Source: Anaeramoeba ignava BMAN (taxonomy: Eukaryota > Protista > Anaeramoebae). Taken from it: a stretch of DNA of 64,000 nucleotides. Below, piece after piece: positions 1,009 through 37,840 of the stretch (positions are counted from its first letter, which is position 1; every line of letters begins with the position of its first letter). The stretch is taken from NCBI GenBank assembly GCA_028826165.1, contig JAPDFW010000076.1:248001-312000 (forward strand), given 5' to 3'. The position numbers and the translations under genes were made by a program. The notes beneath the pieces were generated by a model. That model made no database searches, was not told the origin of the DNA, and was given only the letters and a program-made list of their open reading frames with translations.

Positions 1009-1139
1009 TTTAATTAACTTTTTTTTTTGCCTGCTTTTTAAAATTAAAACAAAAAAAAAATGAGAAAAATTAAAAAAAAAATTTTTTTTCTTTTTTTTCT
1101 TTCTTTTACACGTGTTCTTTAAATTCTTAATTACATTTA

Positions 1140-3215
1140 AAGAAATAAAAAAAATAAGAATAACTTTAATTTAATTTATAAATCATTTTAAAAATATAAT
1201 TTCTAAATTAATTTTATTATTAAAATAATAATTTAATGTTTTAGATTTAAATATTTTCTTATTTAAATATTTAACATATAAATATAAAAAATAAGAATAA
1301 CTTTAATTTAATATCTAATTTATAAATTAATTTAAAAATATAATTTCTAATTTAATTTTATTATTAAAATAATAATTTATTGTTTTAGATTTAAATATTT
1401 TATTATTTAAATATTTAACAAATAAATAAAAAAAATAAGAATAACTTTTAATTTAATTTATAAAATTATTTTAAAATATAATTTCATATTTAATTTTGTT
1501 ATTAAAATAATAATTTAATGTTTTAGATTTAAATATTTTATTGTTTAAATATTTAACATAAAAAATATAAAAATGAAAATAGATTTAATTTAATATTTAA
1601 TTTATAAATCAATTTAAAAATATAATTTAATATTTAATTTTATTATTAAAATAATAATTTAATGTTTTAAATTTAAATATTTTATTGTTTAAATATTTAA
1701 CAAAGAAATATAAAAATAAGAATAGATTTAATTTAATATTTAATTTATAAATCATTTTAAAAATATAATTTCTAATTTAATTTTATTATTAAAATAATAA
1801 TTTAATGTTTTAGATTTAAATATTTTATTATTTAAATACTTAACAAATAAATATAGAATGAAAATAGATTTAATTTAGTATTTAATTTATAAAATAATTT
1901 AAAAATTAATTTCTAATTTAATGTTTTAGATTTAAATATTTTCTTATTTCAATATTTAACATATAAATATTAAAATAATAATTTAATTTAATTTTAAAGA
2001 TTTAAATTTATTTTTTATTAAAATTAATTTATTGTTTTAGATTTAAATATTTAACATATAAATATAAAAATAAGAATAGATTTAATTTAATATTTAATTT
2101 ATAAATCAATTTAAAAATATAATTTCTAAATTAATTTTATTATTAAAATAATAATTTAATGTTTTAGATTTAAATATTTTATTATTTAAATATTTAACAT
2201 ATAAATATAAAAATAAGAATAGATTTAATTTAATATTTAATTTATAAATCAATTTAAAAATATAATTTCTAAATTAATTTTATTATTAAAATAATAATTT
2301 AATGTTTTAAATTTAAATATTTTATTATTTAAATATTTAATATATAAATATAAAAAATAAGAATAGATTTAATTTAATATTTAATTTATAAATTAATTTA
2401 AAAATATAATTTCTAATTTATTTTTATTATTAAAATAATAATTTAATGTTTTAGATTTAAATATTTTATTATTTAAATATTTAATATATAAATATAAAAA
2501 TAAGAATAGATTTAACTTAATATTTAATTTATAAATTAATTTAAAAATATAATTTATTTAATTTTATTATTAAAATAATACTTTAATGTTTTAAATTTAA
2601 ATATTTTATTATTTAAATATTTAATATATAAATATAAAAAAATAAGAATAGATTTAATTTAATATTTAATTAATAATTTAATTTAAAAATATAATTTAAT
2701 ATTTAATTTTATTATTAAAATAATAATTTAATGTTTTAGATTTAAATATTTTCTTATTTAAATATTTAACATATAAATATAAAAATAAGAATAACTTTAA
2801 CTTAATATTTAATTTATAAATCAATTTAAAAATATAATTTCTAAATTAATTTTATTATTAAAATAATAATTTAATGTTTTAAATTTAAATATTTTCTTGT
2901 TTAAATATTTAATATATAAATATAAAAATAAGAATAACTTTAACTTTAATTTAATTTATAAATCAATTTAAAAATATAATTTCTAAATTAATTTTATTAT
3001 TAAAATAATAATTTAATGTTTTAGATTTAAATATTTTCTTGTTTAAATATCTAACATATAAATATAAAAAATAAGAATAACTTTAACTTAATATTTAATT
3101 TATAAATCAATTTAAAAATATAATTTCTAATTTAATTTTATTATTAAAATAATAATTTAATGTTTTAGATTTAAATATTTTATTATTTCAATATTTAACA
3201 TAAAAATATAAAGAA
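1140..3215 (+). repeat. ~143-bp AT-rich tandem satellite (~14 units) at the 5' end of cassette copy 1
   Basis: Anchor TAAGAAT recurs at 2071, 2214, 2358 and 2501 (spacing 143-144). The unit contains TTTAATGTTTTAGATTTAAATATTT. Confidence 0.9.
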
Positions 3216-3516
3216 TGAATATTTAAAAATTGTAATTAGAGCAATGAAAAATTTATACAAATTTTGAATAACAAAAGCAAGCCAACGATTGTTAAATATT
3301 ATTAAAATTAAATTTTTATCTTTATTAAAATATTTCAAATATTCTTTCTAATTTTATTACATTATTGGGAATTATTTTATATGATTTTAAATAAAGAAAG
3401 ATTGATAAAATATATAAATTAGAATTAATTCCAAAATTAAATATTAAATTAAAATAATTTCATTTTTTTTATTTTTTTATTTTTCATTTTTTTCCTTTTT
3501 TTTTAAATAAAAAAAA

Positions 3517-3805: not shown

Positions 3806-6800
3806 ATGAATTTAAATCAAAATCAAAATCAAAATCAAAATCAAAATCAAAATCAAAATCAAAATCAAAATCAAAATCAAAATCAAAATCAAAATCAAAA
3901 TCAAAGAATTCAATCCAAAATTAAAAAATTCAATAAATTCTTAATAAATCAAGCAAATAAACAAATTGGTTTAATGTTTGGAAATAAAAAAACTTCAGAT
4001 TTTCAAATTTATTGTGGAAAAGATAAAATTTCAATTCCTTGTCATAAATCAATTTTAGAAGCTCGTTCAAAATATTTTATGATAAACAGAAGAGAAAACA
4101 AATTTAATTCAATTTATTTTAATAATTTTAGTTCTGAAATTGTTAAACCAATTATTAAATTTTTTTATAATGGAAAATTTAAATTTGATAAACAAAAATT
4201 TGATGAATATTTTAAATTTGCAAATCAAATTAAATTAAAAGAAATTAAAATCAAAATTGAACTTGAAATTCAATCAATTTTTAATATTGAAAATATTTTG
4301 GAAATTTATTTTAAATCTCAACAAATTAATTCAAAAAATCTTTCTCAAAATTGTGAAAAATTTATTTTCCAAAATATTCAATTTATTATTTCAAATCCAA
4401 ATTTTGATAAATATTTAAATCAAAATCAAAATCAAATTTACAATTTTATTGGATTAATTTCTTTAAATCAAAATTTTCCAAATCAACTTCAAATTATTCA
4501 ACAAATTGAACAAAAATGGAATCAAAATAATCAAAAAAAATTGATAAAATTAATTAAATTTGAAATAGATCAAAAAGAAAATCAAATTGAAAATCAAAAT
4601 GAAAATCAAAATGAAAATTCTTTTTCAACTTTATTAAATCAAATTTTACAAACAAAATCAATTAATCAATTTCAAATTCAACAAATCAAAAATAAATCAA
4701 TTTCTCAATTTCAAAATAAAATTGTTTTATTAAATTCAAATATTCAAGAATTTGATGAAAAAGAATTTCAACCTTTACAACGGAATCAGATTCTTCTTGA
4801 TTTCCAAATAAATGATAAACAAAAAGAAAACGAAAAATTAGAAAAAATTAAAAAAGAAATTCAAGAAATTCAAAAAGAATATAAAAAATGGAAAAAAGAA
4901 ATTAAAGAAAAATTTCAAAAATTAATTCAAAATGAAAATGAAAAAATGAAAAAAGAAGATTTACAACAATTTAATATAAGAATTATTAATTTGAAAGATT
5001 TATTTGAACAAAATAGAAAACAAGATTTAGAAAATTTTCAAAAAGAAATTGAAGAAATTCAAAATAAATTCAAAGAAATAAAGAATATAAATTTGGAAGA
5101 AATTGATAAAAAATATCAAGAATTAATAAATTTTCCCAAATTAAAAATAGAAAAAGATTTAAAATTATTTGAAGAAACAATTCAACAATTTAAGAATGAA
5201 TTTGAAAAAAGAAAAGAAGAAATTGAAGAATTTAAACAACTTATTCAACAAAATAAAAATGAAAATGAAAATGAAAATTTAGAAAAAATTGATAAAATAA
5301 TTCAAGAAATAAAAAATAAAATTAAATTCCAAAAAAATAAATATTTAGAAATAATTGAAAAGAAAATCCAAGAAATTGAAATTAAAAATGAAAATTTAAA
5401 TGAAATTGAAAAAATAATTCAAGAAATTAAAAATGAAATTGAAAAAATAAAAAATGAATTTTATTCAAAAATTGATCCACAAATCAAAAATATTCAAAAT
5501 CAAAATCAAAATCAAAATCAAAAATCAAAAATTAAAATTCTTCAATCAATAGAAAAAACAACAAATTTTTTACAAGATCTTTCAAATAAAATTCAACAAA
5601 ATAATCAAAGTAAATCAAACACAAAACAAAAAATAAAATTAAATTGAATTAAATGATTTTAATCAATTTATTATATATTTAATAATATTTCATTTTTAAA
5701 TTACAAAAAAAAAACAAAAGAATTAATTGAAATTGATGTTCCTTTTATTATTGAATGTATGAATAATTTTCCAACAAATGAAATTATTCAAGAAAATGGA
5801 TGTTTTATTTTACAAAAATTTGCAAAAGAAAATGAAAGTAAATATTTATTTTTTAATTTGGAAAATAATTTCATTTATTTTAAAACTTGATTTATTTTTT
5901 GAAATTAAATTTAAATAATATTAAAAATAATAATGAAATTGGAAATTCAAAAGGAATTGAACCTATTATTAAATCAATGAATAATTTCCCAAATAATGAA
6001 AATATTCAAAAATATGGATGTTTAGCTTTAGGGATTATTGCTTTTAATAATGGTAAATAATAAAATAAATCAATCAAAAAATAAATAAATCAAAAAATCC
6101 AAATATTATTTTCCATTTTTCTTTATTTTTTTAAATTTAAAAAATTAAAAAATTAAACACAAAAAAATCAATAGAAAATAATTTCCAAAAAAAAAACAAA
6201 AATAAATTTACAAAATAATAATTATTAATTATTAATTAAAATCCAAAAATAAATAATTAATTTTAAATTTATTTTCCAAAAATTTAATTAAAATAAAAAA
6301 AATAGAAAACCAAATTGAAATTAATAATTTAAAAGGAATTGAACCTATTATTAAATCAATGAATAATTTCCCAAATAATGAAGATATTCAAAAATATGGA
6401 TGTAGAGCTTTAGGGATTATTGCTAATAATAATGGTAAATAATAAAATAAATCAATCAAAAAAATAAATAAATCAAAAAATCCAAATATTATTTTTCTAT
6501 TTTTCTTTATTTTTTTAAATTAAAAAAATTAAACACAAAAAAATCAATAGAAAATAATTCCCAAAAAAAAAACAAAAATAAATTTACAAAATAATAATTA
6601 TTAATTATTAATTAAAATCCAAAAATAAATAATTAATTTTAAATTTATTTTCCAAAAATTAAAATAAAATAAAAAAATAGAAAACAAAATTGAAATTAAT
6701 AATTTAAAAGGAATTGAACCTATTATTAAATCAATGAATAATTTCCCAAATAATGAAAATATTCAAAAATATGGATGTAGAGCTTTAGGGAATATTGCTA

Positions 6801-9800
6801 ATAATAATAATGGTAAATAATAAAATAAATCAATCAAAAAAATAAATTAAAAAATCCAAATATTATTTTCTATTTTTATTTATATATATTTTAAATTTAA
6901 AAAATTAAAAAATTAAACACAAAAAAATCAATAGAAAATAATTTCCAAAAAAAATTAAATTAAATTAAATTAAATTAATTTTAAATTTATTTTCCAAAAA
7001 TTTAATTAAAATAAAATAAAAAAATAGAAAACAAAATTGAAATTAATAATTTAAAAGGAATTGAACCTATTATTAAATCAATGAATAATTTCCCAAATAA
7101 TGAAAATATTCAATATTATGGATGTTTAGCTTTAGGGAATATTGCTAATAATAAAAGTAAATAATAAAATAAATCAATCCAAAAAAATAAATAAATCAAA
7201 AAATCCAAATATTATTTTCCATTTTTCTTTATTTTTAAATTTAAAAATTAAAAAATTAAACACAAAAAAATCAATAGAAAATAATTTCCAAAACCAAATT
7301 TAATAAATAATAAATATTAATTATTAAATATTAATTAAAATCCAAAATAAAAAAATAAATAATTTTAAATTAAATTAATTTTAAATTTATTTTCCAAAAA
7401 TTTAATTAAAATAAAATAAAAAAATAGAAAACCGAATTGAAATTAATAATTTAAAAGGAATTAAACCTATTATTAAATCAATGAATAATTTCCCAAATAA
7501 TGAAAATATTCAAAAATATGGATGTTTCGCTTTAGGGAATATTGCTAATAATAATGGTAAATAATAAAATAAATCAATCCAAAAAATAAATAAATCAAAA
7601 AATCCAAATATTATTTTCTATTTTTCTTTATTTTTTTAAATTTAAAAAATTAAAAAATTAAACATAAAAAAAAATCAATAGAAAATAATTTCCAAAAAAA
7701 ATTAAATCAAACAAAATAATAATTATTAATTATTAATTATTAATTAAATTAAATTAAATTAATTTTAAATTTATTTTCCAAAAATTTAATTAAAATAAAA
7801 AAATAGAAAACAAAATTAAAATTAATAATTTAAAAGGAATTGAACCTATTATTAAATCAATGAATAATTTCCCAAATAATCAAAATATTCAATATTATGG
7901 ATGTTTCGCTTTAGGGAGTATTGCTGCTTATAATAATGGTAAATAATAAAATAAATCAATCCAAAAATAAATAAATCAAAAAATCCAAATATTATTTTCT
8001 ATTTTTCTTTATATTTTTTAAATTTAAAAAATTAAAAAATTAAACATAAAAAAATCAATAGAAAATAATTTCCAAAAAAAATTAAATCAAACAAAATAAT
8101 AATTATTAATTATTAATTATTAATTAAATTAAATTAAATTAATTTTAAATTTATTTTCCAAAAATTTAATTAAAATAAAAAAATAGAAAACAAAATTAAA
8201 ATTAATAATTTAAAAGGAATTGAACCTATTATTAAATCAATGAATAATTTCCCAAATAATCAAAATATTCAATATTATGGATGTTTCGCTTTAGGGAGTA
8301 TTGCTGCTTATAATAATGGTAAATAATAAAATAAATCAATCCAAAAAATAAATAAATCAAAAAATCCAAATATTATTTTCTATTTTTCTTTATATTTTTA
8401 AATTTAAAAAATTAAAAAATTAAACATAAAAAAATCAATAGAAAATAATTTCCAAAAAAAATTAAATCAAACAAAATATTAATTATTAATTATTAATTAT
8501 TAATTAAAATCCAAAAAAATTGAATTAAAATAAATTATTTAATTTTAAATTTATTTTCCAAAAATTTAATTAAAATAAAAAAATAGAAAACCGAATTGAA
8601 ATTAATAATTTAAAAGGAATTGAACCTATTATTAAATCAATGAATAATTTCCCAAATAATCAAAATATTCAAAATCAAGGATGTAGAGCTTTAGGGAATA
8701 TTGCTAATAATAAGGTAAATTAAAAAAAATAAAAAATCAAAAATCCAAATATTATTTTCTATTTTTCTTTATTTTTTTTAAATTTAAAAAATTAAAAAAT
8801 TAAACACAAAAAAATCAATAGAAAATAATTTCCAAAAAATATAAATTTAATAAATTTACAAAATAATAAATATTAATTATTAATAATTAAAATCCAAAAA
8901 AAATGAATCAAATTAAATAATTAATTTTAAATTAATTTTCCAAAAATTTAATTAAAATAAAATAAAAAAATAGAAAACCGAATTGAAATTAATAATTTAA
9001 AAGGAATTGAACCTATTATTAAATCAATGAATAATTTCCCAAATAATCAAAATATTCAAGAAAATGGATGTTTAGCTTTAGGGAATATTGCTTATAATAA
9101 TGGTAAATAATAAAATAAATCAATCAAAAAAAATAAATCAAAAAAATCAAAAATCCAAATATTATTTTCCATTTTTCTTTATTTTTTTTAAATTTAAAAA
9201 ATTAAAAAATTAAACAATTAAACACAAAAAAATCAATAGAAAATAATTTCCAAAAAATATAAATTTAATAAATTTACAAAATAATAAATATTAATTATTA
9301 ATAATTAAAATCCAAAAAAAATGAATCAAATTAAATAATTAATTTTAAATTTATTTTCCAAAAAATTAATTAAAATAAAAAAATAGAAAACCGAATTGAA
9401 ATTAATAATTTAAAAGGAATTGAACCTATTATTAAATCAATGAATAATTTCCCAAATAATCAAAATATTCAAAAAAATGGATGTTTCGCTTTAGGGAATA
9501 TTGCTTATAATAATGGTAAATAATAAAATAAATCAATCAAAAAAAAATAAATAAATCAAAAAATCCAAATATTATTTTCTATTTTTCTTTATTTTTTTTA
9601 AATTTAAAAAATTAAAAAATTAAACAATTAAACACAAAAAAATCAATAGAAAATAATTTCCAAAAAATATAAATTTAATAAATTTACAAAATAATAAATA
9701 TTAATTATTAATAATTAAAATCCAAAAAAAATGAATCAAATTAAATAATTAATTTTAAATTAATTTTCCAAAAATTTAATTAAAATAAAAAATAGAAAAC

Positions 9801-10133
9801 CTAATTGAAATTAATAATTTAAAAGGAATTGAACCTATTATTAAATCAATGTATAATTTCCCAAATAATCAAAATATTCAAGAAAATGGATGTGAAGCTT
9901 TAAGGAATATTGCTTTTAATAATAAAGGTAAATAATAAAATAAATCAATCAAAAAATAAATGGAAAAATGGATATTTATTAAATTAAATTAAATTAAATT
10001 AAAATCAAAAATAGAAAATAGAAGAGAAATAAAAAGATTGAAAGGAATCCAACTTATAAAAATAGCAATTAAAAAATTCCCAAATAATCAAGATATTCAA
10101 TATTATGGAAAATTGGCTTTAAAAAATTTATAA
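3806..10133 (+). CDS. BTB/BACK - coiled coil - Armadillo-repeat array protein, copy 1 (spliced)
   Basis: Exon 1 3806-5609 ((NQ)n; BTB motif SDFQIYCGKDKISIPCHKSILEARSKYF; BACK-like helices; long E/K/Q coiled coil). N-cap exon 5721-5837. ARM exons 5954-6052, 6306-6434, 6681-6812, 7028-7156, 7428-7556, 7807-7938, 8187-8318, 8587-8714, 8974-9102, 9387-9515, 9796-9927. Terminal exon 10015-10133 (ENRREIKRLKGIQLIKIAIKKFPNNQDIQYYGKLALKNL*). All introns are GTAAAT...AG and phase 1 except after 8714 (that exon is 128 nt). Confidence 0.88.
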
Positions 10134-11318: not shown

Positions 11319-12650
11319 TTAATCCTTCTTTTGATCAGCCCATTCTTCAGAAAGTAAAGCAATAACCTCTGCAGCCTTTTGGATATTAATAGTAGGAATC
11401 CATTCACGTTTAGAATGAAACAAATAGCCACCAGCAAAGATATTTGGAGTCAAAACACCCTGAGTAGATAAATTTGAGCCATCAGTTCCACCTCTTATTG
11501 GCTCATTATTAATAACTTTATCTAAACCAGCTTTTTTCATTGCGGAATAAATTTTGTCGACAATTTCAGGATGAGGCTTCAAATATTCAACCATGTTTTT
11601 GTACTGGTGTGTGATTTTCATATTGATTTTCAAGCCAAAATATTCATATTCAAAAGCTTTTACTAAAGATTCCAAAAATTTGATTTTTCGCTGATTCTTT
11701 TCCTCCTCAAAATCACGGATAATCATGGTGACTTTTGTGCATTCAACAGAGCCTGAAAAGTTATAAATATGGAAATATCCCTCTCTTTTGTTAGTATTTT
11801 GTGGGGTTTGTGATTCAGGAATCTGACTGAAAAACTTGCATGCAATTTCTATTGAGTTGACCATAACACCTTTTCCATAACCAGGATGGACATCTTTGCC
11901 TGCAAATTCGAACTCTACGCGCCAAGCATCGAAGCATTCATTGGAGAGCTCGCCGATAGCTCCTCCGTCAATTGTGTAACAAACTTTTGGCAATTTTGAC
12001 AGGTTTATTTTTTTAGTTCCTCCACCAACTTCCTCATCAGGAGTAAAACACACAACCACTTTTGGATGAACCAGTTTATTAGGGAATTTTTTCCATGCTT
12101 CAACCACAGCCATTATCTCTGCGATACCAGACTTGTCATCGGCTCCCAAAAGGGTATTTCCTGAGGAAGTAATAATTTCTTCACCGATGAACATTTTCAA
12201 ATCTTTTGAATCTATTTCAGGATCAATTGTGATATCAGGGTTCTTTGGAAAATCAATGATACCACCTTGATATCTCTCTATAATACGCGGCTCGACATCC
12301 TTGCCGCTCTCTGCTGGGGATGTGTCCATGTGTGAAATCAGGCCAATTGGGTGATTGTTTTTTTCTGTTTCTTCATAACCAGGTGTTGCTGGTATTGTTC
12401 CGTACACGTAATTGTATTCGTCGTGTGTTATGTCTTCAACTCCTAGTTCTTCAAGCTCCGTTTTTAATAGTTTTCCTAGTTCAAATTGTTCCTTTGTTGT
12501 TGGTGTTGTTTCGCTTTCTTCAGATGATTGTGTGTTGATTTTTACATAACGAATAAATCGTTCTTTTGCGTTGTTTCGAAGAAATGTTGTGATTTCTTCT
12601 GGTAAAGTTGTTTTGGAAAGGAGTTGATTAATTGTGTATTGTGGTTCCAT
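11319..12650 (-). CDS. pepT: Peptidase T (tripeptide aminopeptidase, M20B), intronless
   Basis: Motifs ERFIRYVKINTQS, SHMDTSP, LLGADDKSGIAEI, FTPDEEVGGG, IDGG, HPGYGKG, IRGGTDG, FHSKREW are all characteristic of PepT. Confidence 0.95.
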   Translation of the reverse strand: MEPQYTINQLLSKTTLPEEITTFLRNNAKERFIRYVKINTQSSEESETTPTTKEQFELGKLLKTELEELGVEDITHDEYNYVYGTIPATPGYEETEKNNHPIGLISHMDTSPAESGKDVEPRIIERYQGGIIDFPKNPDITIDPEIDSKDLKMFIGEEIITSSGNTLLGADDKSGIAEIMAVVEAWKKFPNKLVHPKVVVCFTPDEEVGGGTKKINLSKLPKVCYTIDGGAIGELSNECFDAWRVEFEFAGKDVHPGYGKGVMVNSIEIACKFFSQIPESQTPQNTNKREGYFHIYNFSGSVECTKVTMIIRDFEEEKNQRKIKFLESLVKAFEYEYFGLKINMKITHQYKNMVEYLKPHPEIVDKIYSAMKKAGLDKVINNEPIRGGTDGSNLSTQGVLTPNIFAGGYLFHSKREWIPTINIQKAAEVIALLSEEWADQKKD

Positions 12651-12846: not shown

Positions 12847-15800
12847 TCAATCCATTCTTTTAATTGCTTTCATACTAACTAATCTTGCCATAATATAATC
12901 TTTTGAGAAATCATAAGGTCTATCTTTTGATGGAATTTCCACAATAACAGGAATTGGATCTTCATGAGCATCTATTAAATGTCGAATTAACTCAGCAATC
13001 TTTTTGATATAAATTTTGATATAAATTTTGATATAAATTTAAATATAAATATAATTATAAATTTTGATATAAATTTAATTATAAATTTTGATATAAATTT
13101 TGATATAAATTTAATTATAAATTTTGATATAAATTTTGATATAAATTTTGATATAAATTTTGATATAAATTTAAATATAAATTTTATTATAAATTTAAAT
13201 ATAAATTTTATTATAAATTTAAATATAAATTTTATTATAAATTTAAATATAAATTTTGATATAAATTTTATTATAAATTTAATTATAAATTTAATTATAA
13301 ATTTAATTATAAATTTAATTATAAATTTAGATATAAATTTAATTATAAATTTAATTATAAATATAATTATAAATTTTTGATATAAATTTAATTATAAATT
13401 TTGATATAAATTTTTGATATAAATTTTGATATAAATTTTGATATAGATTTAATTATAAATTTTGATATAAATTTTGATATAAGTTTTTGATATAAATTTT
13501 GATATAAATTTAAATATAAATTTAATTATAAATTTTAATTATAAATTTAAATATAAATTTTAATTATAAATTTAAATATAAATTTAATTATAAATTTAAT
13601 TATAAATTTAATTATAAATTTAAATATAAATTTAATTATAAATTTAATTATAAATTTAATTATAAATTTAATTATAAATTTAATTATAAATTTAATTATA
13701 AATTTAAATATAAATTTAAATATAAGTTTTTGATATAAATTTTGATATAAATTTAATTATAAATTTAATTATAAATTTAAATATAAATTTAATTATAAAT
13801 TTTGATATAAATTTAATTATAAATTTAATTATAAATTTAAATATAAATTTAATTATAAATTTAATTATAAATTTAATTATAAATTTAATTATAAATTTAA
13901 TTATAAATTTAATTATAAATTTAATTATAAATTTAATTATAAATTTAATTATAAATTTAATTATAAATTTAATTATAAATTTAATTATAAATTTAATTAT
14001 AAATTTAATTATAAATTTAATTATAAATTTAATTATAAATTTTGATATAAATTTTGATATAAATTTTGATATAAATTTTGATATAAATTTTGATATAAAT
14101 TTTGATATAAATTTTATTATAAATTTAAATATAAATTTTATTATAAATTTAAATATAAATTTTATTATAAATTTAAATATAAATTTATTATAAATTTAAT
14201 TATAAATTTTGATATAAATTTTGATATAAATTTAAATATAAATATAATTATAAATTTAATTATAAATTTTGATATAAATTTAATTATAAATTTTGATATA
14301 AATTTAATTATAAATTTTGATATAAATTTAATTATAAATTTAATTATAAATTTAATTATAAATTTAAATATAAGTTTAGTTATAAATTTAATTATAAATT
14401 TAATTATAAATTTAATTATAAATTTAATTATAAATTTAATTATAAATTTAATTATAAATTTAATTATAAATTTAATTATAAATTTTGATATAAATTTAAT
14501 TATAAATATAATTATAAATTTTGATATAAATTTAATTATAAATATAATTATAAATTTTGATATAAATTTAAATATAAATTTTGTTCTAAATTTAAATATA
14601 AGTTTTGATATAAAATTTGATATAAATTTAAATATAAATTTAAATATAAATTTTGATATAAATTTAAATATAAATTTTGATATAAATTTAAATATAAATT
14701 TTGATATAAATTTAAATATAAGTTTTGATATAAGTTTTGATATAAATTTTGTTCTAAATCTAAAAATAAATGAAGCTCTTAATAATTACATGCTGATTAA
14801 TAATTATAATTGCAATATCTCTTCTAGAAAGAAAATTATGAAATGAATTTTCAATAACATCTTGAGGAGTTTCTAAAATAAAAAATAAAAAATAAAAAAT
14901 ATTTGTATTTGTATTTGTATTTGTATTTGTATTTATAATTATATTTATATTTATAATTATATTTGTATTTGTATTTGTATTTGTATTTGTATTTGTATTT
15001 GTATTTGTATTTGTATTTGTATTTGTATTTGTATTTGTATTTACAATTATATTTATATTTAGATTTATATTTTTATTTATATTATATATTTATATTTATA
15101 TTTATATTTATATTTTTTTAAATTTATGTTTATATTTATATTTAAAATTTGTATTTATATTTAATTTATTTTGTATTTGTATTTTTTATTTTGTATGATT
15201 TATATTTTATATTTATATTTATATTTATATTTATATTTATATTTATATTTATATTTATATTTATATTTATGTTTATATTTATATTTATATTTATATTTAT
15301 ATTTATATTTTTATTTATTTTATATTTATGTTTATATTTTATATTTTATTTTTGTTTTTATATTTATAAATTTATTTATATTTATATTTATGTTTTTATT
15401 TATATTTATATTTATGTTTTATATTTATGTTTATGTTTTATGTTTATGTTTTTTTTGTTTTTATTTTATATGTTTTACATGTTTGTATTTTATGTTTATA
15501 TTTTTTATGTTTTTTGTGTTTATATTTATGTTTATATTTTATGTTTATATTTATATTTATGTTTATATTTATTTGTGTTTATGTTTATATTTTATATGTT
15601 TATGTTTATATTTATATTTTATATTTTTATTTTTATGTTTATTTATATTTTATATTTTATATTTATGTTTATGTTTATTATTTATGTTTATGTTTATGTT
15701 TATATTTTATGTTTATATTTATGTTTTATTTTTGTTTTGGAATTTATGTTTATGTTTATGTTTATGTTTATTTTTATATTTTATGTTTATATTTCCATGT

Positions 15801-16835
15801 TTATGTTTATGTTTATTTAATTTATATTTATATTTATATTTTATGTTTATGTTTATATTTATATTTTGTTTATTTTATTTTTATTTTTATGTTTAATTTT
15901 AATTTATGTTTTATATTTATGTTTATGTTTATGTTTATTTTGTATTTTATATTTGTGCATTTTTTATGTTTGTATTTTGTGATTTGTGTTTTGTGTTTGT
16001 GTTTGTATTTGTGTTTGTATTTGTATTTGTGTATTTGTATTTGTGTTTCATTTTGTATTTATGTTTATGTTTATATTTATATTTATATTTATATTTATAT
16101 TTATATTTATATTTATGTTTATATTTATATTTTGTATTTATATTTGTATTTATATTTGTTTATGTTTGTATTTATATTTATATTTATATTTATATTTATA
16201 TTTTATATTTATTTTTATATTTATATTTATATTTATGTTTATATTTGTATTTGTATTTGTATTTGTATTTGTATTTGTATTTGTATTTGTATTTATATTT
16301 GTATTTATATTTGTATTTTGTATTTGTATTTGTATTTGTATTTATATTTATATTTATATTTATATTTATATTTATATTTTATATTTATATTTATATTTAT
16401 ATTTATATTATATTTATTTATATTTTGTATTTGTATTTTATATTTTATATTTATATTTAGATTTATATTTATATTTATATTTATATTTATATTTATATTT
16501 ATATTTATATTTATATTTATATTTATATTTGCATTTGTATTTGCATTTGTATTTGTATTTGTATTTGTATTTGTATTTGTATTTGTATTTGTATTTATAT
16601 TTGTATTTGTATTTGTATTTGTATTTGTATTTATATTTATATTTATATTTATATTTATATTTATATTTATATTTATATTTATATTTAAATTACTATTATC
16701 AACAATTAAGAAATTGGGATTCTTTTTTAAACCAGAATCTCCAACTCCAGCTAAAATAAATCCTGTAACTGTATCTCTATCTCCAATAACAGCTGCTAAT
16801 TGTCCTTCATTTGGTAAAAAAGTTTTTTGAGCCAT
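12847..16835 (-). CDS. ATP6V1F: V-type ATPase subunit F (125 aa, 3 exons)
   Basis: Exons 16835-16694 ([20 protein letters not shown]...NFLIVDN), 14872-14790 ([25 protein letters not shown]), 12999-12847 ([30 protein letters not shown]...*). GT-AG boundaries and phases are consistent. Confidence 0.95.
13000..14789 (-). repeat. Intron 2 of V-ATPase F, filled with a 12-13 bp tandem repeat (ATAAATTTAATT / ATAAATTTTGAT on +)
   Basis: Directly visible, ~1.8 kb. Confidence 0.9.
14873..16693 (-). repeat. Intron 1 of V-ATPase F, filled with a hexamer microsatellite (TATATT/TGTATT/TATGTT on +)
   Basis: Directly visible; explains the spurious ORFs 15149-16830. Confidence 0.9.
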
Positions 16836-17131: not shown

Positions 17132-20100
17132 ATGGAAAATCAAATCGAAAGTAATTCCAAAACATTAACAACACCAGAAGCATTTACATCAGTTACAAAA
17201 GCATTTCAAAAATCACTTTCAACAGAAATTTATTCACTTCTTGATTTTTCAAAAGAACAACAACTTCAAATCAACAAAAATAAAAAACAATCCGAACAAA
17301 ATCTAGACATTAAAATATGGAAAAATTTCCCAAAAAATCAATCATTTTATCACAGATTTTTAACTCAATTCACATCAATTGGAAAATCATGTCCAATTTG
17401 TGCAATTCAATTAATACTTAATTTTCTACCAGAATTTTCGAAAATTATTTCTTCAATTGATCCTGCTTTTTCAAATCAAGAAATAACTGATTCTCCACTT
17501 TCTTTTGATTCTTTTTTGCGAACTATTTTTAATTATAATAAAAAAGAAAAAGATTTCGATATTCTTCAATCCGTTGGAAATTTAATTGTTGCTGATACTA
17601 TTTCTTATATATTTCGAGATTCCAAATTGAATTCAAATTTTCTTGACGAACAAACTGTTAATTTATTATTAGAAATTGCACTTATTTTTTTCCAACCAAA
17701 ATCACCAAAGTAAAAACAAAAAAAAAGCAACATTCTTTTTAAATCAAAATTAAATTTATTTTTTAATTTTTGCTTTTTAGAAAATTACTTCCTCTTTTAT
17801 GGAATTCTTATCAATCTCAAATTACTAAAAAATGGGCAATTATTATTGGTTATTTATCAATTCACAATTTCGAATTAATTTCAACTAAATTTTTTATTGT
17901 TCTTAATTCTAAAAAAGCATCTCAAAACGAAAGTATAATTTCATTACTAAAAGGACTTAGATTCATTTCAACAAAAGTAAAAATATTTTAAATATTTTAA
18001 ATACTTTAAATATTTTAAATTTTATATTATTTTAAATACTTCAAAGAACGCTTCAAATGAAAATCTCGATTTCTTCCTTCAATCTTACTTGCAAATCTTG
18101 AAAATTCATTCAAAAGCTTCGTTTAGATTAGTTCAATTGAAAACTTTTGAAAATTTCATTTCTCAAATTGATTTCTCAAACCAAACAAACTCAAAAATTT
18201 TCGATATTATCGAACAATTCTACAAACAAATCCAAAAAATTTCTAAAAATAAAACACTCAAAGAAGTTTGCACAAAACTAATGGTCACAATCCTTCTTCA
18301 CTCTACTTCAAATTTCTATGAAAAAAACAAAGCCTCTCTCATTTCGAAAAAAATATTCAGCCAATTCAAAAAAGAAAAAAAACAAAAATTTGCTTTGGAT
18401 ATCTTTATAAGAATATTACGCCAAGCTACTCCAAAATTCAATTTGGAAACCCAAAGTTATTTACCTTATATTGTTAGTGAATATCTCATTTCCTTTGATG
18501 AAAATTACCACAAAGAAAAAGGTATGAGAATAAACAATAACGGAAATCAATCCAAAAAATATTTAAGATTAAAAGAAACTTTTGTTTTTGTTTAGAAAAA
18601 TGCATTTTCCAAAAAAGAGTAAAGAATGATGTAAATATGGAAGAAATCATTGACATGCTTCTTGATGATTCTCTCAATTTCCAAAAAAACATCTCAATCG
18701 AATTTTCACAATTAACGCATTTGGCTGAAGTTCTTGTTTTAATTGCTTCTTACAATCTCGAAAAATTTACTACCAAAGTATTTGTGCCTTTGATTGCTAA
18801 GGATAAAGTGGAAAGCTTATTTTTAATAGTCAAAATATTTCGGCTGCTCAATTCAAACAAAATCAAAAAATTCATCAATGAAAACCCGCAAAACCAAAAA
18901 CAATCGCAAAGCAACTTCAATAAAATTCACAAACTTTTCAGTGAAAAAATCAACAAGATACTTTCTTTATGCGAAAAAAACACATTTTCCAATCAAACAC
19001 AGCAAGCAATCCCCATTTTATGCCCAACTGAATCAAGACTTTTTTCAGAAACAATGAACACAAAAACAACCGAAAAAGACGATCAAAAACATTTGGTCTT
19101 TTTCAATGAGAATAATTTCAAATTGCAAGAAAAAATCAACCAAAAATCCAAAATTCAACGATCAGCAACAGACGAAAATCAAAAAATAATTGAGAAATGG
19201 ATCCAAAAGTCAGGGATTGACAAAAAAATCATCCCAGAATTTGTGGAAATGAAATTCCAACTTGAGAATTCACTTCAAAACTTTTCGATAAGTCGATACA
19301 AACAGAAATCCAAAGAAGAACAACACGAATGGATGGAGCTATACAAAGAAGTGATGAAAGTACTGCCTGCAATCAACGATATCGACGCACAATTGAGTGA
19401 TCTTGGGTGTTTTGAGAAGGTAGTTTGCCATCAAGACAGACAGCTTGCGACACTCTGTTCTTATGCAATCCAGGATATTTTTATCGAAAAACCCGATTCG
19501 CGGTTTGTGATTATCGAGGATTTGCTGCTATTGATTAATAATCCACAATACAAAAACCAATCCGCTTTAACAACATTATTTTGGCAACTTGAAATGATAC
19601 TTGATTTATATACAAAACGTTTGGAAATTGAAAAAAACGAAGAAAATTCAATCATTTCTGAAGTTCAAGAGAAACGATTATCAAGAAAAAACATAAGAAC
19701 ATCAACATCCCACATTTTGGATCCCAAGAAAAACGCAATTTTTATTGATTCTGATTGGTTTATCAATATTGACTCGCTTGCTCTGAGTTTTATGTGCCAT
19801 CCCGTATCTTGTATCCGTTCAAGTGCGCTTTCTGTTTTGAAGAAAATATGGAGAGTGCAAAAATTACTGCCCAATATCAGTCCCGAAAGCAAATACACAA
19901 GCTTCTGGGAGGATATACAGATCAACTACAACACAATTTGCGAAAAGGTTCGTTTCAAATATATTCTTGAGCTTCTAAATGGGTTCCGAAATGAGGTGCA
20001 AATTGAGAAAAGCTATTCAACAATAACAATTGAAAAAGCCGCACTGTCACAAAACCAAGTGGTGTGGCTGCTTTTCCTTTCTGAAATTGGAGCCCTTCTT

Positions 20101-23100
20101 GCAGAGAACCAGAACATCAATTTGGTCAAATTGACAAAGTATTCTGTGATGCAGAAAATACACGAACAAAACTCAGCCCAAGTTGTTTACACATCCGAAA
20201 CAAGTTTTAATTATTACGCAAATTTGAATCTTTTTCTTCTTTCTTTTGCCGATCTTAGTGCTAACGTAATTAACAGCCAGGAAAAAGTGCAATTTGAATT
20301 ATCCGAAAAGGAAAAAACAGAAAATCCTCTTTCAAACCAATATTTCACTGATAATGTTGGCAAATGGTTTATTCTCCGCGAAAGAGGATCCACAGAAAAC
20401 GCATTCAAAGCAATAAACATGTTTGAATCAAGCGCATTTGTTGAAGCGATTATTCCCGAATTTTCAAAAGCTTTGTACCATTCTGAGCAGAATTATCGCA
20501 ATTACTCAATATTGGTTTTTGGGATGGCAAATTCCAAAAACATTTCGCCAATTATTCACGAGCTTATTGAAGGCAAAGAGTATGCCAACTATCTCAAATC
20601 CAAATCTTCCCAGAAATCACGAGCAATTGGGGATCTTGCATTAGCAATTCGGATCATTTCGCAGAACAGAAATATCCAAATCGAAATCCGTAAAAAATCA
20701 ACAATGGTCATGAATTTCTTGCAATTTATAAAAATGAGCGAGCAAAGTCTCATTGTAAAACCCTCGCGAAAAAGCAACAGAAAAATGAGCTATTTGCACT
20801 CTGTATCGCTTACCTCAGACACTGGACTATACCATCCATATTCACACTCAATAAATCATTGCCTCATTTTGGCGAACATCAATGATTACATCTCAAAGGA
20901 ATCACGAATCCACACACAAGGATTGCTCAAACACAACTTCTATGTAACCCAAATTGACGATTTTTGGCCGAGAAAAGAGAGATTGGAATGCTTCAACTTC
21001 ATCAAAATATGGTCTGGTCATGGGAGCGAGCAAGCAAAGCATTTTGCCCAAATTCAAGAAACGGAAATCGAGAATTTGGTCTCGCGATTAAAGAACCAAA
21101 ACGAGCAACAAATAACGGAAAAGAAATCAAGATACATGGTGGATCATCTCAGATTATCTGCTCATCTTGCAATGACAAATATAGCAAAATTGGGTCCGTT
21201 ATTTTTGTCGGTTGAAGAAATGGATCAGCAAAGCCAACAATGGTTTATTGATTCCGAACGCAAAGGATACAAAATGCTGAAATGGCTTCTTTCGTTCCAT
21301 TTTTCGGATATTCTTGAGAAATATGTCGATTTTGCTTATCACAGCAAAAAGGAAGATGCTGATCTTTTTTGGATCTCAATATGCGACCAGTTTATTGATT
21401 ATAAACCAAAAATGAGCGAGTTTTCATCAACTGGAATTTTGAGAGATGTTCTTTTTTTCTCAATGGAATACCAAGAAAACCAACTTGAAAGAATTAGGTT
21501 TCCCGAATCAAAGAAAAAGTTTTTTCTGAAGGCAAAAACTTACAAACGAGAAAAATTTGGTTCGCATTATCTTCTTAATTCTCCTCAAATCAGACAACAA
21601 AATAACGAAAATACCGAACATTTTCATCACGAAGATTCTATTGACCCGAAAAAACAAGAAATCATCAACCAGGATTATGAGGAATTCATGAGCACAGTCA
21701 CAAAAAGCTTCGGTGTTATCACTTTGTTGGCGCTTCTGAATCTCTTCAATTCAAACCAGAAGGTTCGCTCCAAAACATTCAAAATGATGTCAAGAACGAT
21801 TCCTGCTATTGTGAGTCGAGAAGCAGCCAAACGCAGCATTCCTGCCAAGAAAATTGAGGATCTCCAAAACAAACTCCATGAATTGCGGAGAAATTTATTT
21901 GGAACAAATTCCATTTCGCTCAGGAAATGGGCTTTAGAAGTAAACTCTTTGGTTGCCAAAACTTGTTCCTCATTTTCAGAACAAATTCTGAACGAAGTTT
22001 TCGGCAGAATACAAGATCAAAAAAGAACAGGAATTTCTTTGAATAGCGAAAGAAGAGAGTGTCTTTATCAAATCCTTGTTGAATGGATTAAAAACGTTTC
22101 GATTGTTGATAAATTCATTGCGATCGGAACAGGTTCAAAGCAAATCCAAACGGAAATCAAGACCAAAAGAATACTCAATTCCATTTTTGATATGACGATG
22201 AACGAACTGGAAGAAACCATGAATTTTTCGAAGTCTCTTTCTGACATATGGGTCTATTTAGTAACGCCAAAAGAGAATCTTGACGAAGACGCAGACACAC
22301 AACCAAAAACACCAGTCAGAACATTAACATTAGCGCTCACTTCTGCTCAACAAACAAAAATCAATGAGAATATGATCTATGTTCTCCAATTTTTAATCAA
22401 ACAGCATAATAAAGGCGAGAAATATGGATCTTTAAGCCGCAAAATTGCTGTGTTTTTATTCCAGAATTTCCCGCAAGAATCATTGATTCCGCTTGTTTAT
22501 CGACTTACTTTTACTTCATGGAATCGCATGAACGGAATCAAATCAAAACTTCTTTATCAGAATATTCCGAAAGATTTTGCATCAAGTTTTGAACACAAAT
22601 CAAAAGAGCAATTTACAAAGGAATTCTTGGACATCCAAGAGGAATTCCGCAACCAATTAGCGCAGCACAAAACAAACCAATCAGCAATGCTTTTTTCAGA
22701 CACCTGCTTAAGAATTCTCAATGATTTCTTGATCGAAGACATTTCGCCAATACTCCCTTATATTCACATCTTGATCCACTATTCTATACTTCGTATTGGT
22801 TGCGCAATTTATGAAGATTCAAAAGAAAAAAAACAACTCCATCTTGAGATACTGATAAGTATTCTCCATTCTCTTTTGAATATCGCCATTCAATCTCGCG
22901 ATATCGAGTCTTCTATTTGGATCCAAAATATGATCGAAATCACAAAAAGTCTCACAATTAAAGGATATTCTTTGGTTTGGAAAGGTCTTCGTGCTTCAAA
23001 AGCAAATATCTCATCAGAAACAAAGGAAAAAAAACCTCAAAGCAAACTTACTCTGAATCTTCTTTACAACAAATTCAACATGAGAAAAAGTGGATTCTTT

Positions 23101-25869
23101 TTCCGCAATAAAAAACGTTTGAGCAACACAGAAATGGATTTCTCAAACATCAAACAAACACAAAACATGCCGCTAAACATGAGAAATGTCGAGGATAAGC
23201 AATTACAAGAAATTCAATTGATTGAAAAATTCTCTTCAATTTCCCTTTTCCAAAAAGACATGATTATAAAGAATTTCTTTGGCAAGAAAGACATCGAGAA
23301 AAAAGAAGACGAAGTAATAGACGAAAAAGAAAAAGAGGAAGAGAAACGGTATTTGGAAGAGAAACAGAGAGTAGAGGAACTAATGCTGATCCAGCCATGG
23401 ATCACCAACACAATCGCTATTTCTGATTTTGTTTCACAACTTTCGACATCAATCAAAAAAATTGTTCCGAAAATTGATAAATCTCTCGGAAAAGAATCAT
23501 TGAAATGGGCGCTGTTTTGTGTCGATCCTTTATATTCTCTAATCAGCTCTGAAATTTATTCGGCATCGCTTTCTCCTCTTAATGAAATTATTATCCAAAA
23601 GTTGATCCAAAGAACACTTTTTGGGTTAAATTCAATGATTTCCTTTTCGTACAAATTGAAAACATCGCGAAGCATGAGATTCCATCTTTCAAAAAACACA
23701 CAAGTTAAATCAACCCGGAGAATTGATCTTGTTCGCATGGGTTTTGGTGATGAAGACGAAGACAACAATGACGACGATAACAATGATAACGATGAAAATC
23801 AAGTGGAACAAATTCAACCACATATCTATCTTTCTTCCTTGATAAGGCTTCTATATTCCGTCACAAAAAAACTCTCAGAAAAAAGCAAACTGAATTCTTA
23901 TCCAGAGATCTTCTGGACTTCAGTTTCGCTCCTCCGTTGCACTCAGCTCATGAATATTTACCAGCAAAGCATCCGTATTATCGAACTATTCATTTATAAT
24001 TCCATTTTATTCAAAAATTTGGAAATCAACAACGATTCAAAAGAAAAAAAACAAAAGCATTCAAGCTCTTTTGGATTGGAATCCTTTAAATCTTTCTCAG
24101 AAAACTGGCGGAAATCATTTGAAGGAATTCAGCCCTTGCTGATTCCCGCATTTTCTTTTGGCTGCACGCGCAAGAAGTTCCTTGGATTAATAACCTCGCT
24201 TAATAGTTTCAAATCACACTATTTAGTCGACCATTCCGAATCTCGTTATCTGATTGGAATTCTTGGTCTTTTGCCGTGGTTCCAATTCATTTTCTTCCAA
24301 AAACCACTTGCAAACACAAAAGTGAATGAAGACACTGGAAGATCAAGAGCAAAACAATTGAGCGAATGGATTGGCAAAGAGCTTCCAAAATTAGTCCCGA
24401 ATTCCCAAAATCTTGCCGGTTTATTTTCTGAGTTTTCCCAACCAAAACAAGAAGAAAACTTCTCGCAATTCGCATCCAATGTTTGCTCAGAATTAACAAA
24501 GTTATTTTTCCCCAAATTTGCCTCTGAAGCGGCTAAGATGATTGCCATTATTTCTGGAAGTGGACCGTCTCCATTTTTTGATGCTTCACTTGATATTGCT
24601 CGATATTTTCTTGAGCAAGAAAACTCTCATTTAGTTTATCATCATTTTTCCGAAATTGTGAAAATTGCTTTGGAAAATTTGAATTCAATCGAACATCAAA
24701 AATCCATTCTTTCTCTTTTGGAAACTTCTGCTCGTGTTTCTTCATCTTTGGATCCTGATCATTTGCCTGATCAACTTGACAATCAAAATCAAAATCATCT
24801 TGAAATGCGATTTTCTTTAAAGGATGCTGAAGATTCGCTTACAAATGTTGTTATGGAAATGAATTTTCAAATGAAAGCAAAACTCCAAAACAAACACAAA
24901 ATTTTTCCTTTAACAAAAAGAATTTTTGAAGAACCTGTTATTTTTTCTCAAAATATCGAAGTTGATAATTCCGAAGAAAAATTAGAAAGAGTTTTTTCAT
25001 TTAAAGAAATAAAAAATCAAGTTCCAAAACCAATACAAAACAAAGAAGAAAAAGAAAAAGAAAATCAAATTGAAAATCCAAAAGAAATTGAAAATCAAAT
25101 TGAAAATCAAATTGAAAAAGAAATTGAAAAAGAAATTAATCTTGATTCTGAAGATGATGAAGATGATGAAAAAAAAGAGCCTTTGAATCAAGAAAATCCA
25201 AATGATTCAAATATTCAAAAAATAACAACAACTCCAAAAAGTATCCAAAGTTCAGAAGAAGAAAACCAAGAAAAAATAGCAAATAATCCAAAAAGCGAAA
25301 CAAAAACAGATGAAAATGAAGATATTGATATTGATATTGATATTGAATTCAAAACTGAACCCAATTCACTTGTTCAAAAACAACAGGAATTCAATGAAAG
25401 ACAAAAATCAACATTGAATTTTAAGCAAATGATTTCAATTAAACAAGATTCTCAAGTTTTAAATCGGGAAGAAATTGAAAAGCAATTCAAAGAAATGATC
25501 CAAAATGAAAATTTAAGAGATCAATTTGGAATTTTTATTGAGAATAATCTTTCAGATGAAGAATCAATTATTTTTCTTTTTTATGAAATTGTCTTGAATT
25601 ATTTATCTTCTCCAAAAGGAAGTAAAGAATCTCTTTCATTTGCTCAATCGATTATTAAAAGATTTATTAATGAAGATTCTTTTGAAAGAATTCCAATCAA
25701 ACTTCAAACAATGAAACAAATTTTCGAAAAATTTCAATTTAATGAAAATTCTCATCCTGATTCTACTTTATTTTCAGATGCAATTGAAGAAATTACTCCC
25801 ATTTTATTACAATCTTTTAAATTATATCTTCAATCAAAAAATCAAAATCAAAATCAAAATCAAAATTAA
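17132..25869 (+). CDS. Furry/Tao3/Mor2-like large HEAT/ARM scaffold with C-terminal RGS domain (~2800 aa, 4 exons)
   Basis: Exons 17132-17709, 17781-17976, 18047-18521, 18596-25869 with consistent phases (2,0,1). Furry-like C-terminal motifs PEIFWTSVSLL and FEGIQPLL. RGS-like end FKEMIQNENLRDQFGIFIENNLSDEE..FLF...AQSIIKRFI...IPI...LFSDAIEEI..IL.QSFKLYL. Confidence 0.75.
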
Positions 25870-26645: not shown

Positions 26646-26689
26646 TTAAATTTATAAAAAATGAAAAAAATGAAAAATGAAAAATGAAA

Positions 26690-27997
26690 AATGAAATAAA
26701 TTTAATTAAAAAAGTGAAATAAATTTAATTAAAAAAAATAGAATAAATCTAATTAAAAAATTGGAAATAAATTTAATTTAAAAAAATAGAATAAATTTAA
26801 ATTAAAAATGGAATAAATTTAATTAAAAATTTAAAAATTAAAAATGGTAAATTTAATTTAAAAAATTAATTTAAAAAGTGGAATAAATTTAATTTAAAAA
26901 TTGGAATAAATTAATTAAAAAATGAATAAATTTAATTTAAAAATAAATTTAATTAAAAAATAGAATAAATTTAATTTAAAAATGGAATAAATTTAATTAA
27001 AAATTTAATTAAAAAGAATAAATTTAATTAAAATTTAATTTAAAAAATAAATTTAATTTAAAAATTGGAATAAATTTAATTTAAAAATAGAATAAATTTA
27101 ATTAAAAATGGAAATAAATTTAATTTAAAAAATTGGAATAAATTTAATTTAAAAAATAAAATAAATTTAATTAAAAAAATAGAATAAATTTAATTTAAAA
27201 AAATGGAATAAATCTAATTAAAAAAATGAAATAAATTTAATTAAAAAAAGTAGAATAAATTTAATTAAAAAATGGAATAAATCTAATTAAAAAAATGGAA
27301 TAAATTTAATTAAAAAGTAGAATAAATCTAATTTAAAAAATGGAATAAAATTTAATTTAAAAATGGAATAAATCTAATTTAAAAAATGGAATAAATTTAA
27401 TTATAAAAAGTGGAATAAATCTAATTAAAAATTGGAAATAAATTTAATTTAAAAAATGTGGAATAAATTTAATTAAAAAAATAGAATAAATTTAATTAAA
27501 AAAAGTGGAATAAATTTAATTTAAAAAATTGGAAATAAATTTAATTAAAAATTGGAAATAAATTTAATTAAAAAAAATAGAATAAATTTAAATTAAAAAA
27601 ATGGAATAAATTTAATTAAAAAATAGAATAAATTTAATTTAAAAAAATAGAATAAATTTAATTTAAAAAGTGGAATAAATCTAATTTAAAAAGTGGAATA
27701 AATTTAATTTAAAAAAGTGGAATCAATCTAATTTAAAAAATGGAATAAATTTAATTAAAAAGTAGAATAAATCTAATTTAAAAAAAATAGAATAAATTTA
27801 ATTTAAAAAGTGGAATAAATTTAATTAAAAAAAAATGGAATAAATTTATTTAAAAATGGAATAAATTTAATTTAAAAATAGAATAAATTTAATTTAAAAA
27901 AGAAATTAATTTGGAATAAATTTAATTTAAAAATGGAATCAATTTAATTTAAAAATGGAATAAATCTAATTAAAAAAAAATAGAATAAATTTAATTA
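26690..27997. repeat. ~20-23 bp minisatellite (GGAATAAATTTAATTAAAAAAT)n
   Basis: Directly visible; the same unit resumes at 37730-37775. Confidence 0.9.
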
Positions 27998-28099
27998 TTA
28001 ATTATTATTTAAAACATAAAATTAAATATTAAATTATATTTTAAAATTAATTTATCAATTAAATATTAGTTCAAACTTATTCTCATTTTTTATATTTCA

Positions 28100-28705
<606 letters not shown>

Positions 28706-37730: not shown

Positions 37731-37840
37731 TAAATTTAATTAAAAAAATGTGGAATAAAATTAATTAAAAAACTTAAAATGATTTCTTCTTTTTTATTAA
37801 AAAAAAAAGAAAAAAAATACTTTCTTTCAAATCATTGCAA

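Follow-up and report, generated by a model that had tools for sequence, protein, structure and literature searches.

Two sister genes lie in a 64,000-nucleotide stretch of the Anaeramoeba ignava BMAN genome (contig JAPDFW010000076.1, positions 248,001 to 312,000; hereafter the window, whose own numbering we use). Each joins a BTB domain and a probable coiled coil to an array of armadillo (ARM) repeats encoded by one exon per repeat, and we call them gene A and gene B. We favour, as a probable reading, the view that they belong to an A. ignava family of recombination-shuffled, positively selected variable binders that probably act as cullin-3 adaptors, their targets being proteins that change fast and are perhaps foreign. 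The evolutionary half of this reading taken alone, shuffling together with selection, we hold to be very likely. It rests on variation concentrated in one groove of the repeat, on amino acid change in that groove that far exceeds change in the neighbouring introns, and on arrays that have been re-sorted between otherwise near-identical genes.

Two sister genes with re-sorted arrays

Gene A (plus strand, 3806–10133) consists of a BTB/3-box and coiled-coil exon, an N-cap exon, 11 phase-1 ARM exons and a C-cap exon. All of its features below are on the plus strand.

3806–5609: exon 1, 1804 nt, defined by its open reading frame (ORF) and a donor GT at 5610 in phase 1; it holds an (NQ)n leader, the BTB domain (about 3947–4390), 3-box/BACK-like helices to about 4530 and then a long probable coiled coil, so assigned from its K/E/Q-rich composition
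5721–5837: exon 2, N-cap ARM exon, 117 nt, phase 1-1 (Pfam ARM_LRRK2, E 1.4e-4)
5954–6052: first repeat exon, shortened, 99 nt, placed from the sequence and from the alignment of intron 2 with gene B
6306–6434: repeat exon a1, 129 nt
6681–6812: repeat exon a2, 132 nt
7028–7156: repeat exon a3, 129 nt
7428–7556: repeat exon a4, 129 nt
7807–7938: repeat exon a5, 132 nt, identical to a6
8187–8318: repeat exon a6, 132 nt
8587–8714: repeat exon a7, 128 nt, which breaks the frame in the assembly
8974–9102: repeat exon a8, 129 nt
9387–9515: repeat exon a9, 129 nt
9796–9927: repeat exon a10, 132 nt
10015–10133: C-cap exon with the stop codon
6053–9795: array introns, 215–289 nt, mutually homologous by alignment (about 3% substitutions), with near-identical splice signals

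A reading made earlier from the sequence only had placed 11 repeat exons between distinct cap exons; all are present at those positions in phase 1-1, and the 11 signatures of variable residues that it listed match the exons. Its exon lengths of 129 or 132 nt hold for most of them, the first repeat exon (99 nt) and a7 (128 nt) departing from the rule. Exon and intron together form a tandem unit of about 380–410 bp (TRF period 380), every internal junction reads AG/GTAAAT, and a 38-mer at the intron–exon junction occurs 13 times against 0.00 expected, which is not chance. The repeat peptides have 76–93% amino acid identity to the first exon, with a mean column identity of 89%. Because each repeat is one phase-1 exon, repeats can be added, dropped and recombined without loss of frame.

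Gene B is on the minus strand of the window, inverted relative to gene A.

35397–28828: gene B, whole
33651–35397: exon 1, its BTB region 1.1% from that of gene A (ORF, Pfam and alignment)
32911–33538: N-cap exons at 33422–33538, 33181–33312 and about 32911–33063
29029–32766: array of 10 phase-1 ARM exons, 129 or 132 nt, none identical to a gene A exon
28828–28946: C-cap exon

The first repeat exon of gene A has an intron-2 acceptor, matching that of gene B, fused to repeat codon 10, while N-cap exons 3–4 of gene B plus about 10 codons are absent from gene A; the alignment suggests that they were probably lost by a deletion across a short shared A-rich/G stretch. The 3' end of a7 holds a short A-run, and its 1-nt shortfall shifts the frame, so that gene A as assembled is in frame only if a7 is skipped or if the A-run was miscalled; the lesion is either a read error or real. 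Summed exon lengths give a product of 1103 aa without a7 and of 1146 aa with a 129-nt a7. In gene B, exon 1 has a frame break near 34620, where a T-run is one base shorter than in gene A.

Outside the arrays the genes differ by 1.1% in the BTB region, 0.9% in exon 2, 1–3% in introns and coiled coil, and 4% in the C-cap. The arrays have no repeat exon in common and are not collinear. Exon distance is 8.2 nt between the genes and 8.1 nt within them, and nearest neighbours cross between genes out of order (exon a3 with b6, intron a3 with b9, intron a1 with b8). Exon distances and upstream-intron distances in the window genes are hardly correlated (r = 0.15, p = 0.08). Two genes about 1–4% apart whose arrays are nevertheless fully re-sorted amount to a near-ideal natural experiment.

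The PHI test gave evidence of recombination for the window units when pooled (p = 0.014) and for three other family loci, L001 (p = 0.0003), L009 (p = 0.011) and L003 (p = 0.045). Recent duplication is indicated by the identical units a5 and a6, which appear to be a tandem duplication of an exon plus its intron, and by four pairs with 0–1 differences in L003. Introns of one gene or gene clade resemble each other and those of different clades have diverged, a pattern of concerted evolution. Judged from these alignments, exon–intron units are modular, homogenised and reassorted between the sister genes. The proposal that the arrays are remodelled by recombination is thus upheld by the PHI results, by the lack of a common exon in sister genes and by the crossing nearest neighbours.

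Variation and selection in the helix-3 groove

A profile hidden Markov model (HMM) of the repeat matches designed ARM proteins, LRRK2-ARM and Vac8. The ARM structure was predicted on an annotated natural paralogue, P0008 (KAJ5068999), the gene A exons being searched individually. The AlphaFold2 (AF2) model of P0008 is a regular ARM solenoid (predicted local distance difference test, pLDDT, 97), for which Foldseek returned designed armadillo repeat proteins (dArmRP), importin-alpha and beta-catenin. The approximately 42-aa, three-helix superhelical repeat expected of ARM was therefore found by both routes, confirming the fold proposed earlier. In the P0008 model, helix 1 (H1) spans repeat positions of about 1–7, helix 2 (H2) 10–20 and helix 3 (H3) 25–39; the earlier assignment of variable residues to ARM positions 4, 25–26, 29–30, 33, 36–37 and 40–41 agrees with these boundaries and with the HMM alignment to designed ARM. 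We take positions 26, 29, 36, 40, 41 and 4 to be groove or library positions in dArmRP design. The helix-3 Asn37 is kept in 139 of the 166 exons described below (84%) and in 7/11 of gene A. Glu30, Trp33 and a conserved Asn lie in the concave peptide-binding site (PMC4756613).

Variation was measured in 166 intact internal exons from 18 genes, which encode 162 distinct peptides. It peaks at codons 2, 26, 29, 30, 33, 36, 40 and 41, sites that lie on a single face of helix 3 except for one in helix 1. The same top eight sites were found when the window genes were left out, and they predict variability in the window genes (0.35 and 0.33 vs 0.03 and 0.01 in cross-validation). Variability along H3 has a 103-degree period (p = 0.00025), as expected for one helix face; it is 0.32 on that face vs 0.044 at exposed H2 positions, and exposed positions of H1, H2 and the loops together range over 0.04–0.06. 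By the helix boundaries of the paralogue model, the variable sites, the helix-1 site apart, occupy one face of helix 3 and are not scattered over the fold. The claim that the repeats are hypervariable only on the binding face is therefore right in its centring on the helix-3 groove and slightly too strict in its 'only', since there are a few off-groove changes (E4K twice, E12K and N19Y). The groove alleles EN and KY at 29–30 are found in 10 genes with identical codons, and F33 (TTC) is private to the window gene pair.

Within genes, non-synonymous diversity (pN) in the groove is 0.29 against a synonymous diversity (pS) of 0.07 overall, and 0.29–0.31 against 0.01 in genes A and B. The earlier impression of a scaffold without synonymous differences was borne out by a count in genes A and B, whose 19 full-length exons that keep the frame have 0 extra synonymous and 31 extra amino acid alleles. 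Because AT bias could depress pS, the homologous introns were used as a neutral yardstick. At codon positions 1 and 2 of the groove the window genes differ at 0.31 per site, vs 0.033–0.035 in introns, a difference of about 10-fold, and the groove exceeds the introns in 15/15 genes measured (0.24–0.41 vs 0.015–0.13 per site). A codon model, with omega profiled on a grid because free optimisation in IQ-TREE stayed at 1.0 for some partitions, gave omega of about 4 in the groove (2dlnL about 28 vs omega = 1), about 0.5 at other exposed positions and about 0.25 in the core. The groove value is significant for the window pair and for L001. Diversifying selection centred on the groove is thus supported.

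The direction of change agrees with this. Codon 36 keeps its third-base G across GGG/TGG/TTG/TCG/AAG/AGG, although the GC content at third positions (GC3) of the scaffold is 10%, which indicates that amino acid change outran mutational drift; groove GC is 32%. The intron comparison and the direction of GC change rule out the explanation that dS is low through AT codon bias. Sequencing error is ruled out as the source of the variants, which are in-frame, codon-specific and shared by different loci. We conclude on these statistics that the groove is under positive, diversifying selection.

The BTB module, the family and the neighbourhood

Exon 1 of gene A has a Pfam BTB match (E 2.4e-10), whose best sequence match in the PDB is the BTB/3-box of SPOP. 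The AF2 model of this domain (pLDDT 87) is matched by Foldseek to SPOP, KBTBD2, vaccinia A55 and KLHL11, and by both sequence and model it continues into the 3-box/BACK-like helices of SPOP. The closest solved BTB relatives are all cullin-3 adaptors or binders, and we read the module as a probable adaptor of SPOP/KLHL type. The expected cullin-3-adaptor type with BTB and BACK domains is thereby supported for BTB and the SPOP-like helices, and not for BACK as a Pfam domain, as the Pfam scan of gene A found BTB and no BACK; among paralogues BACK scored only in P0032. About 8–9 cullin loci are present in the A. ignava genome.

The family was sought in the A. ignava genome (42.8 Mb, 147 contigs, AT-rich) and 20 loci besides the window were examined, so that family counts are lower bounds. 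The best 150 candidates of the genome searches include repeat exons of at least 30 arrays, spread over at least 23 contigs, and arrays in the loci examined run from a few to about 25 repeat exons. No opposite-strand or reservoir repeat exons were found inside the arrays of the window and these 20 loci, and the window ORFs that were scanned yielded neither a recombinase nor a reverse transcriptase. Six loci (L010, L011, L012, L013, L015 and L016) have BTB regions 93–96% identical to that of gene A and only 0–2 ARM exons detectable in the DNA examined; array and BTB/coiled-coil module may thus be swapped one without the other. At L017 (C6:33500-43000) two family genes stand tail to tail with their C-cap exons < 200 bp apart. 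Nine of the 11 broken internal repeat exons are in L005 (C55) and L009 (C60), mostly at A/T runs and one by a TGA at codon 33, so that these loci are either poorly polished regions or decaying genes. Public annotation serves the family poorly, one close paralogue being a truncated 396-aa model and others being named 'aardvark'.

A more distant BTB-ARM member, the transcriptome-derived P0042 (EukProt), spans several genomic exon positions, which is indirect evidence that some family members are transcribed and spliced. It equals the genome model P0178 over 550 aa and then switches, inside the scaffold, to repeats that match other contigs at 91–93%. The loci concerned are G000:C74:232552-234401, C24:230367-230916 and C61:498593-499332, and the P0042 tail has no 100% match among the scored candidates. 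An assembly chimera is likelier here than a true inter-locus recombinant.

The same type of ARM repeat is fused in A. ignava to BTB, RCC1-BTB, RING-kinase-SH3 and U-box domains, and elsewhere to MLKL_N, TIR-like DUF4062, U-box/kinase and ADP-ribosyltransferase (ART) domains, a promiscuity typical of sensor modules. Two DUF4062(TIR-like)-ARM genes of Salpingoeca rosetta (L021 and L022 on GL832988.1, about 60 kb apart) are candidate choanoflagellate immune sensors. Both are intronless, so that one exon per repeat is not a feature of this ARM subtype at large. The named homologue matches and the profile matches looked up included no A. flamelloides member, in word- and length-limited searches that do not prove absence.

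A 143-bp AT-rich satellite accompanies the family. A tandem-repeat scan places it upstream of gene A (1139–3216); direct copies lie around gene B as an array (36434–37744) and a single copy (27967–28107), and at least six further family loci have it nearby. Possibly it helps genes of the family to duplicate or move. Gene B is also flanked on both sides by 23-bp minisatellite units. The remainder of the window holds the following.

11319–12650, minus: uninterrupted 443-aa M20 peptidase ORF, about 30% GC, presumably peptidase T-like; a candidate for bacterial lateral transfer
13008–14771, 14899–16691 and 26687–27997: long AT minisatellite blocks between genes, of 12-bp, 6-bp and 23-bp units respectively
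18637–25869, plus: uninterrupted 2410-aa ORF with a MOR2-PAG1 (Furry/Tao3-like) C-terminal domain, with pieces upstream at 18089–18595
37841–43000, minus: RasGEF gene in pieces (exons)
48583–49500, plus: VPS11-like TPR and RING ORF
53319–54737, plus: 472-aa ORF with no Pfam match
58883–59836, plus: DUF1749 alpha/beta hydrolase

Known systems, rival explanations and significance

The closest parallels are the ROCO (LRR) and NB-ARC-TPR candidate immune receptors of Ectocarpus and other brown algae (PMC3341825, PMC11378527). As there, each repeat is one exon of constant phase, ligand-facing residues are under diversifying selection (here by maximum-likelihood omega, with the caveat of recombination), and sister genes are near-identical save for the array, where recombination between recent paralogues is concentrated; intra- and intergenic recombination and a birth–death family are also common to both. 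The analogy drawn earlier with exon-shuffled LRR/TPR receptors is therefore apt. The Anaeramoeba genes differ in using ARM rather than LRR or TPR, and BTB and a coiled coil rather than ROC-COR or NB-ARC (only BTB and ARM were found in gene A). Their host is a metamonad rather than a stramenopile, and alternative splicing has been shown for the brown-algal genes only. An Ectocarpus-like reservoir of inverted or inactive intronic exons is ruled out for the arrays of the window and the 20 loci.

The HNWD and other high-internal-conservation (HIC) repeats of fungal NLRs resemble ours in having near-identical repeats, concerted evolution, a few hypervariable, positively selected sites, repeat gain and loss, and exchange between genes (PMC13449251). 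We took the 76–93% identity to the first exon as matching the 80–100% identical repeats with few hypervariable sites of that class. The fungal units differ from ours, which are separated by introns and come, in gene A, with no NACHT/NB-ARC NTPase or cell-death effector; and the HIC repeat types surveyed are ANK, TPR, WD40 and LRR, ARM not being among them (PMC13449251). Nematode and plant MATH-BTB and F-box adaptors, as reported from Thomas (2006) in PMC4334554, show expansions with a positively selected substrate-binding domain for which degradation of foreign proteins was proposed. As far as that secondary account goes, they share with our genes, whose adaptor role is predicted, a large birth–death family of cullin-adaptor type with a conserved cullin-binding domain and a selected substrate domain, and differ in that the substrate domain here is an exon-per-repeat solenoid, recombinable repeat by repeat. 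Gene A, with no NTPase or ROC domain, no LRR, TPR or WD40 and no reservoir exons, is a member of none of these three groups.

Designed armadillo repeat proteins (PMC4756613, PMC11228518) have a similar consensus-like scaffold with variation at helix-3 peptide-pocket positions; ours are natural, and of the LRRK2/aardvark type, in which H2 and H3 stand two residues further apart. Transcription activator-like effectors (TALEs) and diversity-generating retroelements (DGRs) also come to mind, the resemblance lying in near-identical modules of which a few codons are hypervariable, and the NNT/NNG codon patterns superficially resemble adenine mutagenesis. The suggested likeness to a TALE code fails, there being no two-residue code and no small alphabet (8–9 variable sites and 154 different signatures in 166 exons). 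DGR-type adenine mutagenesis is ruled out by invariant third-position adenines in the scaffold (codon 8 TTA 165/165, codon 10 GGA 165/166, codon 22 CCA 153/153), and no template repeat was seen, nor was a reverse transcriptase among the window ORFs scanned.

In the mechanism that we propose, the N-terminal BTB/3-box would most probably form dimers and bind a cullin-3-type ubiquitin ligase, as its structural relatives suggest. A coiled-coil arm would carry the ARM solenoid, whose concave helix-3 groove would bind extended peptides. Unequal crossing-over and gene conversion among the approximately 400-bp units, within a gene and between sister genes, can reassort the repeats and, as the sequence pattern shows, also keep scaffold and introns homogenised. 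Positive selection, as the statistics show, retains new residues at about nine groove positions. The selective agent would be fast-changing non-self proteins of symbionts, prey bacteria, viruses or parasites, tagged for degradation; by analogy with the systems above, non-self targets are likely.

Several observations weigh against this reading. A one-base frame break interrupts both window genes as assembled and several paralogues, 11 of 177 internal repeat exons are broken, and some genes in the family may thus be pseudogenes. PHI was not significant when gene A or gene B was tested singly, nor did the groove omega reach significance for L003 or for L009 taken singly, and recombination biases omega estimated on trees. 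We chose the groove set with the variability table already in view, the cross-validation being the unbiased test, and position 36 is counted among the buried inter-repeat residues in designs (PMC4756613).

A different account of the same genes is diversification within a clone, by exon skipping or frequent mitotic recombination, giving many binders per gene. Uniform 1-1 phase and near-identical splice signals would permit this, the 128-nt exon, if real, would need skipping, brown-algal ROCO LRR exons are alternatively spliced (PMC11378527), and P0042 passes from the C74 gene to the repeats of another locus. We nevertheless regard it as unlikely, because the arrays examined hold no inverted or orphan reservoir exons of the kind found in Ectocarpus ROCO genes, because the window ORFs scanned include no recombinase or reverse transcriptase, and because the P0042 switch is the outcome expected of a de novo assembly chimera. 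On our best reading, diversification is evolutionary, between genes and lineages, and nothing shows a programmed somatic process. The 'programmable' receptor of the sequence-only reading accordingly survives as one that is evolvable through population-level shuffling and selection, and not as a programmed machine.

Somewhat more doubtful is an ordinary expansion of cullin-3 adaptors for the cell's own substrates, for example regulators of symbiosome trafficking, in which groove variation would arise by sub-functionalisation or relaxed constraint with AT bias masking synonymous change. In ARMC5 the ARM repeats precede the BTB domain. This protein shows that BTB and ARM together can make a CUL3 adaptor for host proteins (PMC9462479, PMC9226510), trafficking families are expanded in Anaeramoeba (PMC11550330), and synonymous sites are strongly A/T-biased. 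ARMC5, for which we claim no orthology, is conserved, acts on host substrates (RPB1, SREBF) and lacks homogenised hypervariable repeats. Against this account, relaxed constraint cannot give a groove that changes at about 10 times the intron rate or shifts toward G/C, other exposed faces remain conserved, and wholly different arrays in genes 1% apart are too fast a change for conserved host substrates. Improbable too, and bolder, is an anticipatory intracellular recognition in which ARM exons of at least 30 loci would be re-sorted within clones, by skipping or directed mitotic recombination, into new peptide-binding ubiquitin-ligase adaptors policing bacterial symbionts or invaders.

Recognition of self and non-self (kin or allorecognition), or of selfish elements by their host, as with fungal HNWD, rather than anti-microbial defence, we consider very unlikely. 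The repeat dynamics are those of fungal HIC WD40 repeats that control allorecognition (PMC13449251), but the Pfam scan of gene A gave no NACHT/NB-ARC or cell-death domain. A further point that we count against it is that we know of no allorecognition in Anaeramoeba. That a satellite-like unit of little function has expanded selfishly in tandem, or is an artefact of assembly, would fit an AT-rich long-read assembly with homopolymer frame breaks and the satellite copies on both sides of gene B, but is hardly credible for exons in which purifying selection acts on the core codons (omega about 0.25), whose lengths are multiples of 3 with splice sites kept, and which in 162/166 cases encode distinct peptides, with in-frame substitutions at the same codons across loci.

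We found no description of the BTB-ARM array family in the literature searched, including the Anaeramoeba papers. Read as shuffled and selected binders, these genes would extend the strategy of a homogenised repeat with a hypervariable binding face, known from brown algae and fungi, to the ARM scaffold, with a probable ubiquitin-ligase output in place of NLR or ROCO signalling, in a metamonad that houses bacterial symbionts. They would offer a natural counterpart of designed armadillo binders, with 150+ selected pocket combinations on one scaffold, and a testable candidate for intracellular immunity or symbiont control in a protist.

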